Part shown: positions 9,184-24,547 of the stretch, piece by piece
Position numbering within the stretch: position 1 is the first letter of the stretch
Layout: every line of letters begins with the position of its first letter
Sequence record: LT960552.1
DNA length: 64,000 bases
Strand: one strand, 5' to 3'
Notes under the pieces: generated by a model
Told to the model about the DNA's origin: nothing
What the model saw: only the letters and a program-made list of their open reading frames with translations
Database searches by the model: none
Made by a program: the position numbers and the translations under genes

Positions 9184-10983
9184 ATGGAGTGTTATATAAT
9201 GATTATTAAAGTTATCCAAAAAGTTGTGTCTCTTGAAGATTGTGTTTACGACATTGATGTACTAAACAAAATTCAAAAAGAAATTGGTTCTGAAAATGTA
9301 GTTACTTATTCGGTATCCCCAAAAAATATTGTTTTTTATGTTGAAGATCATGGTAGTCAATTCACGATTGATATGGAAGTTGAAACACAGACATATGTAT
9401 TGCCAGTAATTGCTGGATATGAATTATTTGAAAAATTCCCAAATGTATTCAAGAAGACCAAGATAACAGGTGTTAATTCATTTATTGATAATATTATTGT
9501 AGCTGAACTACACAAAGATGAAAATATTGATATTGACGAATATAAAAATAAAATGCGTAAATTAGTAAATTACTATATTGGAAAGCGTATACCAAATAAA
9601 CAAATTGAATTCGTTAATGGTGGTGTGCAAATTTTTGAACCAAATGGTGACATTGTAATATTACTTGATAAGTATGTTCTAGAGTTCGATCCTGCATCAT
9701 ATGATATTCAGGATGAATCTGAAAGAAACACAACTCTTATTCGTCGTTCAGAAACAATTCGTGATGATTATTTTTATACTTCAGATGAAGAAATTACTCC
9801 TGAAGAAATCAAAAAAATTTTCGATGAGACAAAAGAGTTTCTTGATGAATTGAAAAATAAAGAACAGCAACCTGACGTGAGCAAAATCGCTGGTACTGAT
9901 GCAATTAAAGATTTACTAAATGTGTTCGAATCAATCGAAAATGATTTACCTTATGCAGCAGCAGTTCTATCTTATAATGAATATGAAAAACATGTTCAAG
10001 CAATGAAAGAACTTCTAATTGATGTACGTAGTGCCGATGAAGATACAACTACTATGGCTCAGTCATCAATAAAAAGCTATAATTCTATGAATACAACAGA
10101 TAAACTTAATTCTGCACCTTCTAAAGAAGTTGTTGCATTACGATGGAGTAAGATTCCAGACGGTGCTACTGCTGGTGAGGAATATATTCTTAATGCACCA
10201 GCTACAGAAGCAGAGATTGAAGAATTAACTCAAGAAGAACTTCGTGAATTAACTAAAGTACAACGCAGTAATGAAGTTATTGAAGTTGAAAATGCAGTAA
10301 TTAGTTTTGATGCATTTGATAGTTACGCTTCTAAACATCATGTAATTGGATGGGATTTAGCAACACCAAGTACTTTATCAATTAAGTTTATTGAAGGTAT
10401 TACTCCAGAAAGTACTATTAGGAAATTTCACGATATGATGGATAATCTTGATACTGGTTGGATAAACAGTTATCAAATGAATAAATTAAAATCAGTTGAA
10501 GAAAGTACTAAATTCTTAGCCGATCTCAGAAATATGATTATTGATGAAAAAGATATTGCAGATGAATTTATATCTCGTGTAAACAAGCATAACATATTTG
10601 TACGTGATAGCATTTCTAAAATCCGTGCTTCTTTACTTGATATGGAAAATGATTTTGAACGTTCATTAAAAAATGAAGTTAATTTATCCATTGATTGGGA
10701 TAAACTAACTGCCTATGCAGCTAAAAAAGAACGTACTGAACATCGTGTTAAGGGTGTTCGTATTATTTCTGGCAATGATGGTGTAACATCTAATGTTGTT
10801 CGTGTTAATTCTGAATTCGAAAATGGTGATTTCTTCATTCCAATACATTTACTAACTGATGAAATACGTTCAAAATATGTAATTGAGAGTTATCCACAAT
10901 ACATTGAAGATGTTCCAGATTACGCATTCCATGAAGTACATTTAAATGGTCACTTCATTCTTATTGAAAATACCGAACTATAA
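9184..10983 (+). CDS. acidic hypothetical protein (~595 aa)
   Basis: Long ORF followed by terminator 10990-11019. Confidence 0.8.
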   Translation: MECYIMIIKVIQKVVSLEDCVYDIDVLNKIQKEIGSENVVTYSVSPKNIVFYVEDHGSQFTIDMEVETQTYVLPVIAGYELFEKFPNVFKKTKITGVNSFIDNIIVAELHKDENIDIDEYKNKMRKLVNYYIGKRIPNKQIEFVNGGVQIFEPNGDIVILLDKYVLEFDPASYDIQDESERNTTLIRRSETIRDDYFYTSDEEITPEEIKKIFDETKEFLDELKNKEQQPDVSKIAGTDAIKDLLNVFESIENDLPYAAAVLSYNEYEKHVQAMKELLIDVRSADEDTTTMAQSSIKSYNSMNTTDKLNSAPSKEVVALRWSKIPDGATAGEEYILNAPATEAEIEELTQEELRELTKVQRSNEVIEVENAVISFDAFDSYASKHHVIGWDLATPSTLSIKFIEGITPESTIRKFHDMMDNLDTGWINSYQMNKLKSVEESTKFLADLRNMIIDEKDIADEFISRVNKHNIFVRDSISKIRASLLDMENDFERSLKNEVNLSIDWDKLTAYAAKKERTEHRVKGVRIISGNDGVTSNVVRVNSEFENGDFFIPIHLLTDEIRSKYVIESYPQYIEDVPDYAFHEVHLNGHFILIENTEL

Positions 10984-11031
10984 TACCCAATATACCAGCT
11001 TAATCGCTGGTATTTTTTTAATTAAGATTTT

Positions 11032-11060
11032 TGGAACAGAAAAAAATGATCTGGTATAAT
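11032..11060 (+). promoter_or_regulatory. TG(G/A)AAC-N14-TGGTATAAT promoter
   Basis: Same spacing as nine other copies. Confidence 0.7.
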
Positions 11061-11072
11061 AGAAGTACAGAA

Positions 11073-11478
11073 AATTTTAGATACAACTCTGATTGACAAG
11101 GATTTCCCTTGATGTGATATAAACCTGATCCTATCGAAAAGTAGATGGCAGATGAGTAGTTCAATCAGTACGATGAGCAGATGAAACCCGTTAGAGTACT
11201 AGCAGTCATACAAAGAGACATAAGACTACGAATCACGGCAATGTGGCTCAATAAAGAAGTGAGATAAGCATATCAACACTTCCTCGATAGACATATAAGG
11301 TCACTTACCAATACGCTAAGGGAGCCAGAAATGGCACAGTACTAGTTTGGTCGAATAGATCAGTACTGAGTGGAGCAATGAGAAAACTCCGACCGTTGCA
11401 TATGACTGTGATAGAGAGAAACCGAGCAACCCGCTTTCGTTCTCCATAATTAAGTACAATGAAGTTGTATCTAAAATT
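11073..11478 (+). ncRNA. large structured ncRNA candidate (~406 nt)
   Basis: Perfect 16-bp terminal helix, nested internal helices, own promoter, no ORF. Confidence 0.7.
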
Positions 11479-11748
11479 CAGAGAAATTCACAATTCGACA
11501 GATTCCGACGACTATCATCGTCAGGTATAAAATCCAGTACACATGTGTACTTTTTTTACGTCTTTATTCCCCCTGTGGGGGGATGAAAATACCTCAACAA
11601 ATCTCGTCAGTATAATAGTATTAAACGTATTAAAAAATGAATTGAGTTGTTTCAGTACAAACGAAGTGAAGTACTGAATAACGAAAATTCTTTGACATTC
11701 GAAGAATGGCAAATCTAGTATAAAACAAAAATTAGAAGGTATAATTAT

Positions 11749-12375
11749 ATGGGTACACGTAATTTAATTGCTGCAATAAAAGATGGTCAAGTGAAAGTAG
11801 CACAGTACAGTCAGTGGGATGGTTATTTTGAAGGCCAAGGTGAAGATATTGCTAAATTTATTCGAGTTTCATTAGCAGAAGAAAGTACTTCTCAACAATT
11901 CCGTGATAATATTAATAAATGTGTGTTTGTTGATGATGAATTTATACGAAATGCACATATTGAATCTGGTATAGATCCCGATGCACAATATGTAGCAATG
12001 GGAGATCCCGCACTTAAACTTTATGAAGATAAGTATCCTCAATTTAATCGTAATACTGGTTCGGATATTTTTGATCTTATTTTGAACGGTACTTTTGAAC
12101 TAAGAGATAATTTTTCTTTTGGTAATGATAGTTTGTGGTGTGAATTTGCTTACATTCTAAATCTAGATAACAATACTTTAGAAATCTATACAGGTTTTCA
12201 AACATCCCCTTCTGATGATATTCCAGAAATATATCGTCGTTGGGTAAATGATCCAGATAGTGAATATTATCCAGTAAGACTACATACTATTGTTAGTTTT
12301 AGTGAATTATGGGAAAATGAAAATTATATGAATGAACTTGCTCAATCTGAACGAGATATTGAGGAAAATGAATAA
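11749..12375 (+). CDS. conserved phage hypothetical protein (MGTR...QWDGY type)
   Basis: N-terminal motif shared with 14409-15128. Confidence 0.8.
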   Translation: MGTRNLIAAIKDGQVKVAQYSQWDGYFEGQGEDIAKFIRVSLAEESTSQQFRDNINKCVFVDDEFIRNAHIESGIDPDAQYVAMGDPALKLYEDKYPQFNRNTGSDIFDLILNGTFELRDNFSFGNDSLWCEFAYILNLDNNTLEIYTGFQTSPSDDIPEIYRRWVNDPDSEYYPVRLHTIVSFSELWENENYMNELAQSERDIEENE

Positions 12376-12396
12376 TTAAACATATAGGAAAATAAT

Positions 12397-15300
12397 ATGG
12401 GATTAGATATAACAGCTTACCAAAATATTAAAATTATAGATTCTCCTGATTTGGATGATAATGATGAAATTATTGGGTTATCATATGATGAATATTTTAA
12501 TGTTTATAATTATACATATTTCAAAGAACATTTCAAAGATTTAGAAGTTAATGGCTATTATGAGTTTGAAGATAGTTTTAATTTTAGAGCAGGTTCATAT
12601 GGTGGGTATAATTCATGGAGAAATGAATTAGCATTTATTGTTTGTAAATTGAATAATTTATCTAGTACTTTACCATCAGATACAAAAAATTTATATTCTA
12701 ATATTATATGGAATCTTCCTGAAAATAATAATATACCATTATACAAATTCATAAACTTTTCTGATTGTGAAGGTATAATTGGTACTGAGTATTGTAATAT
12801 TATATATAAAGAATTACTATCTATTGAAACTGAATTTAAATCACATAATTATATGTTTGATGATGCGTATAATCATAATAATAAATTATTTGATAATTGG
12901 TTATTAGCATTTAAAATGGGTTCAGAAAATGGATGTGTTAGTTTTCATTAACAAAAGGAAAAATAAATGCCTAACATGGGTTATTGTATGTTCGAAAATA
13001 CATCGAACGATATGCAAGATATAATTGATGAAATGTATAACGATGATTTTGATCCAGATAAGTTAAGTATAACTGAACGTAGAGCATTTGATTCGTTATG
13101 GGATCAATGTGAAACTATGCATAATAGATTATCTGAAATTGATGATATGTTACAACAACGGTCTGATGAGTATGAAGAATCTCAACAAAAAAAGATGGCA
13201 GAACGCCCATTGGATAGTACTGATGATTTTTCAATACACACATTTACGAGGAAAGATTAATGTTTAATGATGATGAACTTAATGCATTTTATGCAGGTAA
13301 AGAACAAGGTTATAAAGATACTGAATATAAAAATCCACATATGGAATTTATTTCTGGACTTGGTGGTGCTGTTTCCATTGCTGAAGATAAATTACATCAA
13401 CAGTTTAAACGTGGTTATGAATGGGGAAAAGCTCAAAAAACTGAGGAAGATTCGAAATGAATCAAGAACCATATATTAAAACTATCCGTACTATAGAAGA
13501 ATTTCATTATAATCCAGAGTATGGTGATGAACGTATTTGTGAATGTGGACACTCTTATTATCGCCATTTTGATTCATATGAAGAAATGTCACCAATCGGA
13601 TGTAAGTACTGTCAATGTTTTGAATTTGTTGAAATTCAAGATGGAAAGGATACAATTGCTGATGCTGGTGACCAAGGGTATAAAGACGGAAAAGCTGGTT
13701 TGCGATACTTAAACCCGTATGCTCAATATGGTTCAGATGGTCGTTGGCATGAAGAATACAAAACAAAATATAATTATGGTCTTGACACTTATCGAGATTT
13801 AGGAAACACTAATGACTAATAACGAAGCACTAAAATTAGCAGTACAAATGCATAAAACTTTCAATGAAGTTGATTCACCTATTAGTTTAGATTTTGAACT
13901 ATGTGAATATCGTTGGCGTATTGATGGTGATTGTATTTGCTATATTGAAGAAGATGGTACTATTGACGACTTTGAAGGAGGAAACTATTACTCATTAGAA
14001 ATTTGTTATATTTCATATGAAGATGATGAATTTCTTCACGCAAAGGTTGACAATGGTTGTGGAGATCGTTACTATATAGTATTCCTAAAAGAGAATTTAT
14101 TGCCTAATGAAAACGACTGGTGAAGCACTTGCAGAATTGAATGAAATCAGTACAGGTTGGGAATTACTTTATGATGGTAGTCAAGGGATACCAGCCTTTT
14201 ATGTTTTCAGTAATAATTATATTAAAATGACCTATTATTATGATGATCGATACATTGCTGAACATGGTGCAGTTCGTTATAACGATGACCGTTCAATGTC
14301 TGGTGATTTTCAACATACGGCACATGATGCGTATGAAAGTTTAAAAAATGCTATGAATACATATGCTCAAAATATATTAAATCTTGTAATAAAAATGTAA
14401 GGAATTTTATGTCTACACGTTCAAATATTAATGTTAAAGTTGGTGATAAGTACCATTCAGTATATTGTCACTTTGACGGTTATCCAAGTGGTGTGGGTAT
14501 GATGCTTGCACTCCATTATAATACTCAAGAATTAGCAGAACAATTAGTATCTAATGGTGATCTTTCTTCTGTTTATGAATCTTGTGAAAAACCAGAAGGG
14601 CATACATTTAATACTCCAGTTAAAGGTTACTGTGTATATTACGGTCGTGATCGTGGAGAACAAGATACTGAATTCACTGTAGTTGATGAACCAGTTTGGG
14701 AAAATGTTTTTAGTTATGCATGGGATGGTACTAAGTGGACTATCTATGGTTACGAATATGATGAAGACGATAACATGACCGAATGGCATCGTACTCCATT
14801 AGATGAAATACTAGGTTTAGAAGTTGAACAAGTGGATAAAATTCTGGATGATGAAAGTACTAAAGTATTCAAGTATTTCGGTACTAATATGGATGAAGTT
14901 CAAACCATTTATAATGAGTGGGATGTGACGTTTAACACACCAGATGAGAAAATGACAGATTCATATAACGAACGTATTCGTTGGATGGTACGCCATAGAT
15001 TTGCTCCATATCAAGGTGTTGATGAAGATGGTATCTGGCATCATACATATTTCGGAAGAACTTTATTTGAAGCAGTAAGTAAAGCTACTGAATACTTAGC
15101 TCGTGCAAAATACTTAGAAGAAGAATAATATGAGTAATGATATTTTTGAATTTTATCCTATCGATGAACTACATGAACCTACCGATGGTTCTGTAGTCTA
15201 TTTAAATCGATATTGGATTGTTAAAGATAATTGTGTACTTCGTTTTATTAGAACTAAATCTTGGCAATGTAACGCACATGAAATGATTATACAAAATGCC

Positions 15301-21400: not shown

Positions 21401-21698
21401 GGCATCTGTAACTATAACTAAGTACAATGAACATATTCAGTACTTTGGAGTTTGGGATCATAAGTTATCGCATGTAATCTTTGATTCGCAAGATGATGGA
21501 TTTGTTCAGATTTTTGATATTGATAGTATTTTATCTAATGATTGTTTAAAAGAATTTGCATCCATTTACGATATTGAAGATGCCGATTTAGAGCGTTTTA
21601 GATTAACACGTGAAAATATTATTGTACTTTTTAATTTACGTAGTCAAATTCTACAAAAATTGAAAAAAGATGAAACAATACAAAAAATTGTGCTATAA
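18455..21698 (+). other. block of small hypothetical genes (18455, 18661, 18956, 19192, 19623, 19931, 20236, 20574, 20935, 21258)
   Basis: Contiguous, mostly overlapping ORFs. Confidence 0.7.
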
Positions 21699-24428: not shown

Positions 24429-24547
24429 CAAAAAATACTTGACACTGATATTAAAACATTTTATTTTATCAGTGTCAAGTATAAACAATACATTTTAATT
24501 TATAGAAGCACATTTATTTTTTCAACTAAAAGTAACAGGATGATTTA

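Follow-up and report, generated by a model that had tools for sequence, protein, structure and literature searches.

A family of large structured RNAs, probably a new class, in Rak2-like jumbo phages and in small integrative islands of Enterobacterales

The locus and its promoter

The DNA analysed here, referred to below as the window, is a stretch of 64,000 nucleotides of record LT960552.1 and belongs to Yersinia phage fHe-Yen9-03 (Eneladusvirus), a Rak2-like jumbo phage of 352 kb. A gap of 766 nt between its genes g349 and g350 carries no annotated gene and is filled by an RNA unit which, in the version found at this locus (paralog class IV), extends from position 11032 to about 11680 (Table 1). 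The coding sequence of g349 ends at 10983 and is followed by an intrinsic terminator, which therefore sets the 5' limit of an independent unit, and the promoter of g350 lies 3' of the last conserved piece. As the initial annotation had stated, the region lacks an ORF: none of at least 60 aa overlaps it, the only ones present being minus-strand ORFs of 47-48 aa. The same annotation called the region purine-rich, which is correct in direction (57% purines vs 54% in the window), but the excess is only marginal. The G+C content is 39.7%, compared with 31.7% in the window, and the predicted fold is more stable than that of shuffled controls (MFE z-score -3.26).

The promoter reported just upstream is indeed there, being of the sigma-70 type with an extended -10 element (TTGGAA/TGGAAC at 11031-37 and TGGTATAAT at 11052-60) and a predicted transcription start at about 11066-11068. 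It is also annotated in the fHe-Yen9-03 record, and it is kept in all the paralogs and in the island copies described below. This promoter belongs to a class, TGRRAC-N17-(TG)nTATAAT, with 10 sites in the window vs 0.16 expected, all of them on the + strand (the others at 21671, 28287, 34262, 40778, 42195, 55321, 55504, 59689, and 63416). Several sites of the class are located 35-50 nt 5' of tRNA genes, and the class looks like the stable-RNA promoter of the phage. In phages CBB and GAP32, a 'divergent RpoD-like' promoter with the motif TGAAACG has been described and linked to DNA-synthesis genes (PMC5259590); the class in the window matches this promoter.

Contigs from four RNA libraries (three studies), which derive from relatives with 80-97% identity and may have originated from DNA, map to 11006-11716. 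Many of them are short and confined to the unit, and they report its presence only, without strand, ends or level. They are compatible with transcription of the unit.

A conserved, pseudoknot-rich fold

In order to define the fold, 73 non-redundant members of the family (<97% identical) were aligned and scanned for covarying column pairs. The initial annotation had proposed a large structured non-coding RNA and had named the lack of conserved pairing in relatives as what would speak against it. Such pairing is conserved: the 66 pairs of the 13 helices are canonical in 93.7% of 4,701 cells vs 73.5% in column shuffles (maximum 74.4% in 200 shuffles), with 952 double-change cells and a compensatory double change in 59 of the pairs. 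Pairing falls to 16-63% when the partner strand is slid by one or two columns. The strongest helices are long-range ones, such as the pseudoknots PK1 (99.0% paired, 184 double-change cells) and PK2 (98.9%, 108 cells), each of which occurs in 16 distinct complementary variants. RNAalifold, run on 30 members, independently recovers P7, PK2, P10, and P12, and 22 of its 29 pairs show compensatory changes. These compensatory changes maintain the pairing in five paralogs per genome, in several genera, and in host islands. Moreover, G-U pairs far outnumber A-C combinations, with 138 vs 8 in the eight best helices and 65 vs 0 in the apical part of P7, which is 99.5% paired, so the functional product is the RNA of the + strand.

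The folded core of about 435 nt (11067-11499) contains at least 13 helices, including the long-range PK1 and PK2 and the crossing P9/P10, and about 90 invariant junction nucleotides, for example GAAAAnGUAG, AGAUGAG, ACCCGUUAG, CACGGCAAUGCGGC, GAUAGACAUAUAAGG, UAAGGGAG, CGACCGUUGC, and AACCCGC. P2 has the invariant loop GAAAAGUA, which is followed by the invariant AGAUGAG, and the junction GAUAGACAUA is placed between the hairpins P5 and P6 (within 11256..11324). Several nested helices of the initial annotation belong to this fold, namely CTGATTGA/TCAATCAG, GAAGTG/CACTTC, and GGAG/CTCC, which correspond to P1, P5, and P8, respectively, all with covariation support; from the pair GTCG/CGAC, GTCG lies within the covarying strand of PK1 (11350-56 with 11493-99). 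A further helix, CAGTCATA/TATGACTG, is present in this sequence, but it falls in a variable insert, is paired in only 57% of the family cells, and is not conserved.

Table 1. Positions of the features of the unit, of its flanks, and of three host islands (window positions unless another sequence is named)
Feature	Position	Strand	Remarks
Intrinsic terminator of g349	10992..11023	+	8-bp stem (10992-11013), then T run
Promoter	11032..11060	+	TGGAAC (-35-like), 17-nt spacer, extended -10 TGGTATAAT
P0, 5' arm	11073..11088	+	perfect complement of 11463-78; class IV only
P1	11089-96 with 11161-68	+	64 double-change cells in 7/8 pairs
P1a, variable hairpin	11097-11111	+	enclosed by P1
P2, hairpin	11131-35 with 11144-48	+	enclosed by P1; 49 double-change cells in 5/5 pairs
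P3	11174-78 with 11246-50	+	100% paired in 356 cells; 62 double-change cells
P4	11188-91 with 11235-38	+	100% paired in 288 cells
Variable insert within P3/P4	11193-11233	+	conserved flanking motifs ACCCGUUAG and CACGGCAAUGYGGC
P5, hairpin	11256-61 with 11277-82	+	170 double-change cells
P6, hairpin	11296-99 with 11304-07	+	92% paired
Invariant UAAGGGAG	11317-24	+	3' of P6
P7, long hairpin	11337..11368	+	13 pairs, most with compensatory changes
PK1, 5' strand	11350-56	+	P7 loop GUCGAAU; pairs with AUUCGAC 11493-99
P8	11372-75 with 11387-90	+	
P9	11395-99 with 11426-30	+	100% paired, 35 double-change cells; crosses P10 and PK2
PK2, 5' strand	11407-11	+	pairs with UCACA 11488-92
P10	11414-18 with 11434-38	+	100% paired, 80 double-change cells
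P12	11440-44 with 11481-85	+	RNAalifold
Module in P12 loop	11450..11478	+	conserved motif GUACAAUGAAG, then P0 3' arm 11463-78
3' strands of P12, PK2, and PK1	11481..11499	+	P12 11481-85, PK2 11488-92, PK1 11493-99
Hairpin presenting direct-repeat site 1	11507..11524	+	short, poorly conserved; site 1 UCGUCAG, 11518-24
Terminator-like palindrome	11537..11557	+	weak, then U7; <3 G-C pairs, hence not called in the terminator scan
Conserved trailer	11563..11610	+	hairpin UUUAUUCCCCC/GGGGGGAUGAA (11563-87) with invariant G run, then CAACAAAUC, site 2
Direct-repeat site 2	11604-10	+	UCGUCAG
Distal hairpin	11651..11678	+	variable stem, conserved loop (ACGAAGUGA-like); last conserved piece of the unit
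Promoter of g350	11692-11721	+	3' of the last conserved piece of the unit
Island, Enterobacter chinensis	L159 6500-17120		between nadC and ppdD
Island, Serratia fonticola	L158		adjoins rof and tilS
Island, E. coli LR-29-1	L161 9959-20303		adjoins ffs

The arms of P0 are exactly complementary (16 of 16 positions, with 374 nt between them), as first noted. No other perfect long-range inverted repeat in the window is as long, and we estimate that about 0.01-0.04 such pairs would be expected by chance. However, P0 does not close the RNA, as had been proposed: it is kept in class IV orthologs and absent from paralog classes I, III, and V, with a family-wide pairing of 61%. The module to which its 3' arm belongs, where the arm is preceded by the motif GUACAAUnAAG, is a local hairpin before P7 in these three classes. 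P0 is thus a peripheral module specific to class IV. The 3' limit formerly set at 11478 has to be moved as well, since conserved pseudoknot strands continue at 11481-11499, and it is with this segment that the folded core really ends. The window holds one other perfect 16-nt inverted repeat, and none besides, which is a hairpin at 24435-24482 (ATACTTGACACTGATA, a 16-nt loop, and the complement).

The 3' part of the unit

Beyond the core, the unit carries a terminator-like hairpin with a U run, which is probably the 3' end of this copy and would give an RNA of about 490 nt. Classes II, III, and IV and most of the island copies have a hairpin and a U run at this position, and classes I and V lack them. 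Conservation extends about 150 nt beyond the hairpin, through a trailer with an invariant G6 run, in a genome with 32% G+C, that becomes A+T-rich after it, and up to the distal hairpin, which is 47% paired in an alignment too noisy for counts. The 5' neighbour of the terminator-like palindrome, a hairpin GACGA/UCGUC (P11), was considered as a further helix and not counted, being only 60% paired and without compensation.

Two copies of UCGUCAG, one in this last hairpin and one at the end of the trailer, constitute direct-repeat sites 1 and 2 and thereby bracket the trailer. In 70 of 70 members, their 5-nt cores are identical to each other. Seven variants, from three lineages, are among these, so that mutated cores (CUUCA, UGUCA, and CGACA) stay matched, which represents a covariation of identity. 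One of these variants belongs to a single paralog, the sister copies being unchanged. A search inside the unit found no complementary partner for the duplicated CGUCA sites.

Five ancient paralogs in Rak2-like phages

The region in the window is one of five diverged paralogs of the ORF-less unit. In the sister genome fHe-Yen9-04, the five copies lie at about 24.6, 93.3, 174.3, 260.4, and 334.7 kb, all on the + strand, and the one at 260.4 kb corresponds to that of the window. Five copies are also present in each of GAP32, CBB, BF, 7t3, XaC1, and Hallingskeid, and four and three were recovered in 121Q and RaK2, respectively. Altogether, the unit is found in all 72 records of Rak2-like phages, at about 280 places, and the hosts of these phages comprise Escherichia, Klebsiella, Salmonella, Erwinia, Yersinia, Serratia, Cronobacter, Pectobacterium, and 'Xanthomonas'. 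A scan of IMG/VR for the conserved motifs retrieved 54 stretches, each of them from a contig of 350-380 kb or from a fragment of such a phage, and about 20 uncultivated viral contigs of 350-380 kb carry the unit. The UViG L084 looked like an island in the tree, but it is an ordinary phage fragment with the context of class III.

In the tree, the copies from Eneladusvirus and Mimasvirus fall into five classes of orthologs, which makes the paralogs older than those genera. The copies of XaC1 and of RaK2 cluster instead by genome, each paralog having another one of the same genome as its closest relative, which suggests gene conversion or re-expansion of the copies in these two phages. Each copy lies in a separate unannotated gap, 650-790 bp in size, and the neighbouring genes are unrelated between copies. 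The class III copy lies on the + strand and is flanked by minus-strand genes, so the unit is not simply a leader.

In fHe-Yen9-04 and eight further phages, the copies are evenly spaced, syntenic, and co-oriented. As an example, the gaps between the copies of Hallingskeid measure 66.5, 77.1, 79.4, 65.3, and 77.9 kb. By our own post-hoc estimate, five points placed at random would show a minimum gap this large with a probability of about 1e-4 to 5e-3, a value that varies with the genome, and these genomes are syntenic and hence not independent cases.

Copies in host islands

A scan of one genome per prokaryote species for the conserved motifs resulted in 24 matches, eight of which are full-length homologs (nhmmer E 1e-97 to 1e-110). 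These come from Serratia fonticola (a complete chromosome), Serratia sp. 2723, Silvania, Enterobacter chinensis, Buttiauxella, two Enterobacteriaceae assemblies, and one misbinned 2.8-kb contig. The host copies are all located in small integrative islands of Enterobacterales, and their occurrence is rare: two of 5,426 complete E. coli genomes have the unit, in an unannotated gap; among 401 sampled Enterobacterales genomes, it is present only in the query genome and in none of the 400 others; and no plasmid of PLSDB has it. The five host genomes that were searched whole contain one copy each. The island copies have retained the promoter, the trailer, and the complete fold, in which the pseudoknots show compensation. 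In the tree, they fall at three or more places inside the phage copies, which implies repeated movement between phages and islands.

Besides large recombinases of the serine or tyrosine type, the islands (three of which are given in Table 1) encode a cI/Cro-like switch and cargo of the defence type, including DarT with a DarG-like protein, a UvrD-like helicase, DUF4238, HNH, and DUF4326/DUF488 proteins. They may be satellites of Rak2-like phages or defence islands against them. About six of nine islands have the unit directed into their cro-like and membrane-protein genes and encode a conserved protein with three transmembrane segments (3-TM) downstream of the RNA and co-directionally with it. 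This arrangement is found in E. chinensis, Buttiauxella, Silvania, RIT714, and E. coli LR-29-1, where the unit lies upstream of, and is co-directional with, the genes of a cro-like repressor and the 3-TM protein, and is antisense to that of a cI-like repressor. In the two Serratia islands, on the other hand, the unit adjoins two ParB/RepB-like genes and converges on them. The conserved island protein has 286 aa and three N-terminal membrane helices; it belongs to no Pfam or PHROG family, has no informative neighbour in the ESM Atlas, and has no homolog detectable by tblastn in the phage. It is not a replication initiator.

Comparison with known large RNAs

When the whole window was searched with cmscan for all 4,227 Rfam families, nothing reached the gathering thresholds, RNase P RNA and group I and II introns included, and ARAGORN found no tmRNA in 10000-13000, in agreement with the absence of tmRNA and RNase P signatures noted from the sequence at the outset. 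With relaxed filters on 10950-11760 (811 nt), only four chance matches appeared at E<=10, none of them to ROOL, GOLLD, or OLE, which leaves the suggested kinship to ROOL and GOLLD without a match. It is accordingly very improbable that the RNA is a diverged member of ROOL, GOLLD, OLE, RNase P, tmRNA, or group I or II introns. Its size, ornate fold, and phage context do resemble those of ROOL and GOLLD, and its motifs AGAUGA and AACCCGC presumably resemble the conserved regions IV and V of RNase P; against this stand the lack of any Rfam match at gathering thresholds and of a tmRNA prediction, the five copies, and the absence of flanking exons, the unit sitting between a terminated gene and a separately promoted one. 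No description of the element was found in the literature on these phages and on large phage RNAs. Thus, the RNA probably represents a new class of large structured RNA outside the catalogued families, which was the better of the two options initially put forward.

The closest parallels are still ROOL (RF03087) and GOLLD (RF01998), which are likewise large, ORF-less, structured RNAs of phages and prophages, encoded by stand-alone genes that are often found among tRNA genes; multimers have been seen for both. However, no covariance model of these families, nor that of OLE (RF01071), matches the new one. Whereas the hosts of ROOL and GOLLD are Lactobacillales and rumen or lake bacteria, the new family is found in jumbo phages of Enterobacterales, its core measures about 450 nt vs about 580 and 800 nt in ROOL and GOLLD, respectively, and it differs from both in having five diverged and evenly spaced copies per genome and a pseudoknot-rich architecture. 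Several diverged paralogs per genome, each with its own promoter, are also known from Qrr1-5, but these are Hfq-dependent base-pairing RNAs of about 100 nt, whereas the new RNA is large and predicted to be compactly folded.

ORF-less RNAs of the + strand are also made by the Pseudomonas jumbo phage PA5oct, which is related to the Rak2-like group. RNA-seq detected its ncRNA001-004, with 236-619 nt, and two of them account for 1-5% of the phage reads each (PMC7318152). A search with the family profile (nhmmer) discarded ncRNA002 as a homolog, finding no similarity.

Possible roles of the RNA

That the unit constitutes a genuine family of structured-RNA genes, we regard as practically certain. 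The selected product is the RNA itself, because of the compensatory changes and the excess of G-U on the + strand. A DNA-level repeat or MITE-like element with 16-bp terminal inverted repeats, whose RNA would have no role, could be read from the perfect 16-bp inverted termini 374 bp apart and from the multicopy state. This reading was rejected, and we give it hardly any credence: the inverted arms exist only in class IV and are missing in most paralogs, the copies hold syntenic and ancient positions across genera, each of them has a promoter, and only a single-stranded product of the + strand explains the compensated pairing with G-U far above A-C.

Regarding function, the reading we favour, tentatively and at slightly less than an even chance, is that of a stand-alone RNA particle acting in trans. 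The RNA would end at the weak terminator (about 11557) or be trimmed near the duplicated UCGUCAG sites, and the resulting compact particle would act in trans on a conserved partner, as a scaffold, a decoy, or possibly a ribozyme. It would be produced together with the phage tRNAs from the same class of promoters, as part of an unusually rich RNA toolkit of the phage; the five copies would serve dosage, and the few copies in islands would be captures, exploiting that partner or counteracting it. Such a particle is supported by the complex fold, the promoter of the tRNA type, the terminator found after the core in most copies, and the independence from neighbouring genes. However, a trans-acting gene needs neither even spacing nor co-orientation, and the conservation of the trailer past the terminator-like hairpin, as well as the lack of a terminator in classes I and V, also argue against it. 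The spacing, the common orientation, the trailer beyond the terminator, and the orientation in the islands support instead a role bound to the locus, a leader or antiterminator and an origin primer taken together, which is a serious possibility without being the expected outcome. In a broader form, which we find conceivable but somewhat doubtful, the copies would be chromosome-scale cis elements of the 350-kb genome, with a large, folded nascent RNA acting at its own locus (as origin primer or landing pad, or as antitermination station), and the unit would have been captured by host islands at least three times to sense, ride on, or sabotage the phage.

Two mechanisms can be distinguished for a locus-bound role. 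In a cis-acting leader or processive-antitermination station, the folded nascent RNA would remain with its own RNA polymerase, modify it, and permit read-through of the internal terminator and transcription far downstream, so that five co-oriented stations, about 70 kb apart, would cover the 350-kb chromosome, and the islands would use the unit as an infection-responsive switch. We consider this unlikely, though not far-fetched. It would account for the evenly spaced, syntenic, and co-oriented copies, for a terminator-like hairpin placed inside the unit with conservation beyond it and dispensed with in classes I and V, and for the islands where the unit points into cro-like and membrane-protein genes, above all the five in which it precedes the cro-like repressor and the 3-TM protein and opposes the cI-like repressor; the promoter, moreover, is of a phage-specific class (PMC5259590). 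The known examples, put of phage HK022 and EAR, are also structured RNAs just 3' of a promoter, with a terminator after them, and they act on their own transcription complex, as the new RNA could. However, these RNA antiterminators have 65-120 nt and two or three stems, as against 13 helices with several pseudoknots in the about 450 nt of the new RNA. Two minus-strand genes lie ahead of the class III copy, the gene after the copy of the window has its own promoter, the unit converges on ParB-like genes in the two Serratia islands, and the same class of promoters drives tRNA genes, that is, stable RNAs.

Rather improbable, in our view, is the second mechanism, a primer RNA for a replication origin, where the structured transcript would give rise to an R-loop or a primer close to the G run and the A+T-rich trailer and the replisome of the phage would amplify the islands on infection. 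The models would be T4 oriF/oriG, which use middle promoters, and ColE1 RNA II, which share with the unit a phage- or plasmid-specific promoter whose transcript measures a few hundred nt and is not translated; both the fold and a G run are important for making the ColE1 primer, and T4 has several origins per genome. ColE1 RNA II is about 555 nt long, and in the unit about 545 nt separate the start from site 2. The even spacing of the five copies, with the post-hoc probability estimated above, the invariant G6 run, the A+T-rich trailer, the two identical iteron-like sites, and the ParB/RepB-like neighbours in the Serratia islands would suit an origin, and so would the location of all copies on the strand with 94% of the genes (PMC5259590) and the tie of the promoter class to DNA-synthesis genes in CBB (PMC5259590). 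Against it, a primer does not need a conserved tertiary fold, and the conservation of tertiary structure is far greater in the new RNA than in T4 oriF/oriG or ColE1 RNA II; no antisense regulator was seen, either. GC and AT skew along the whole sister genome fHe-Yen9-04 show no feature at the five loci, the GC skew following gene orientation without a change at any copy, and the unit is on no PLSDB plasmid. The paralog that changes both repeat sites while its sister copies do not is a poor fit to a shared initiator protein.

Bacteria and phages have few large RNAs with complex and conserved tertiary folds, and the majority of those known belong to the ribozymes or to the core machines of the cell. 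The orphan large RNAs OLE, GOLLD, ROOL, and raiA have attracted strong interest from structural biologists, and the family described here would join them as a well-supported new class. Its natural variation is already enough for a reliable model of the secondary structure, pseudoknots included, and tractable hosts are at hand in the phages of E. coli, Klebsiella, Salmonella, and Yersinia, such as 121Q, PBECO4, phAPEC6, and RaK2. The five ancient, evenly spaced paralogs and the repeated capture by defence-type islands provide testable clues to function.

Annotation and neighbours of the unit

Several phage records list small 'hypothetical protein' CDS that run across the RNA unit, in many cases on the opposite strand. 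Examples are fHe-Yen9-04 (LT960551.1 / NC_042116.1, 260265-261075) and the records of 7t3, Hallingskeid, the SD-series, and others. These CDS are probably spurious gene calls, and the annotation is corrected here in this sense.

Close relatives differ in the gene that directly follows the class IV RNA. This slot is occupied by an ADP-ribosylglycohydrolase gene in Serratia phage BF (L014 2102-3031) and by the gene of an unrelated 208-aa protein in fHe-Yen9-03 (window 11749-12375), and it seems to accommodate variable cargo behind the class IV unit.
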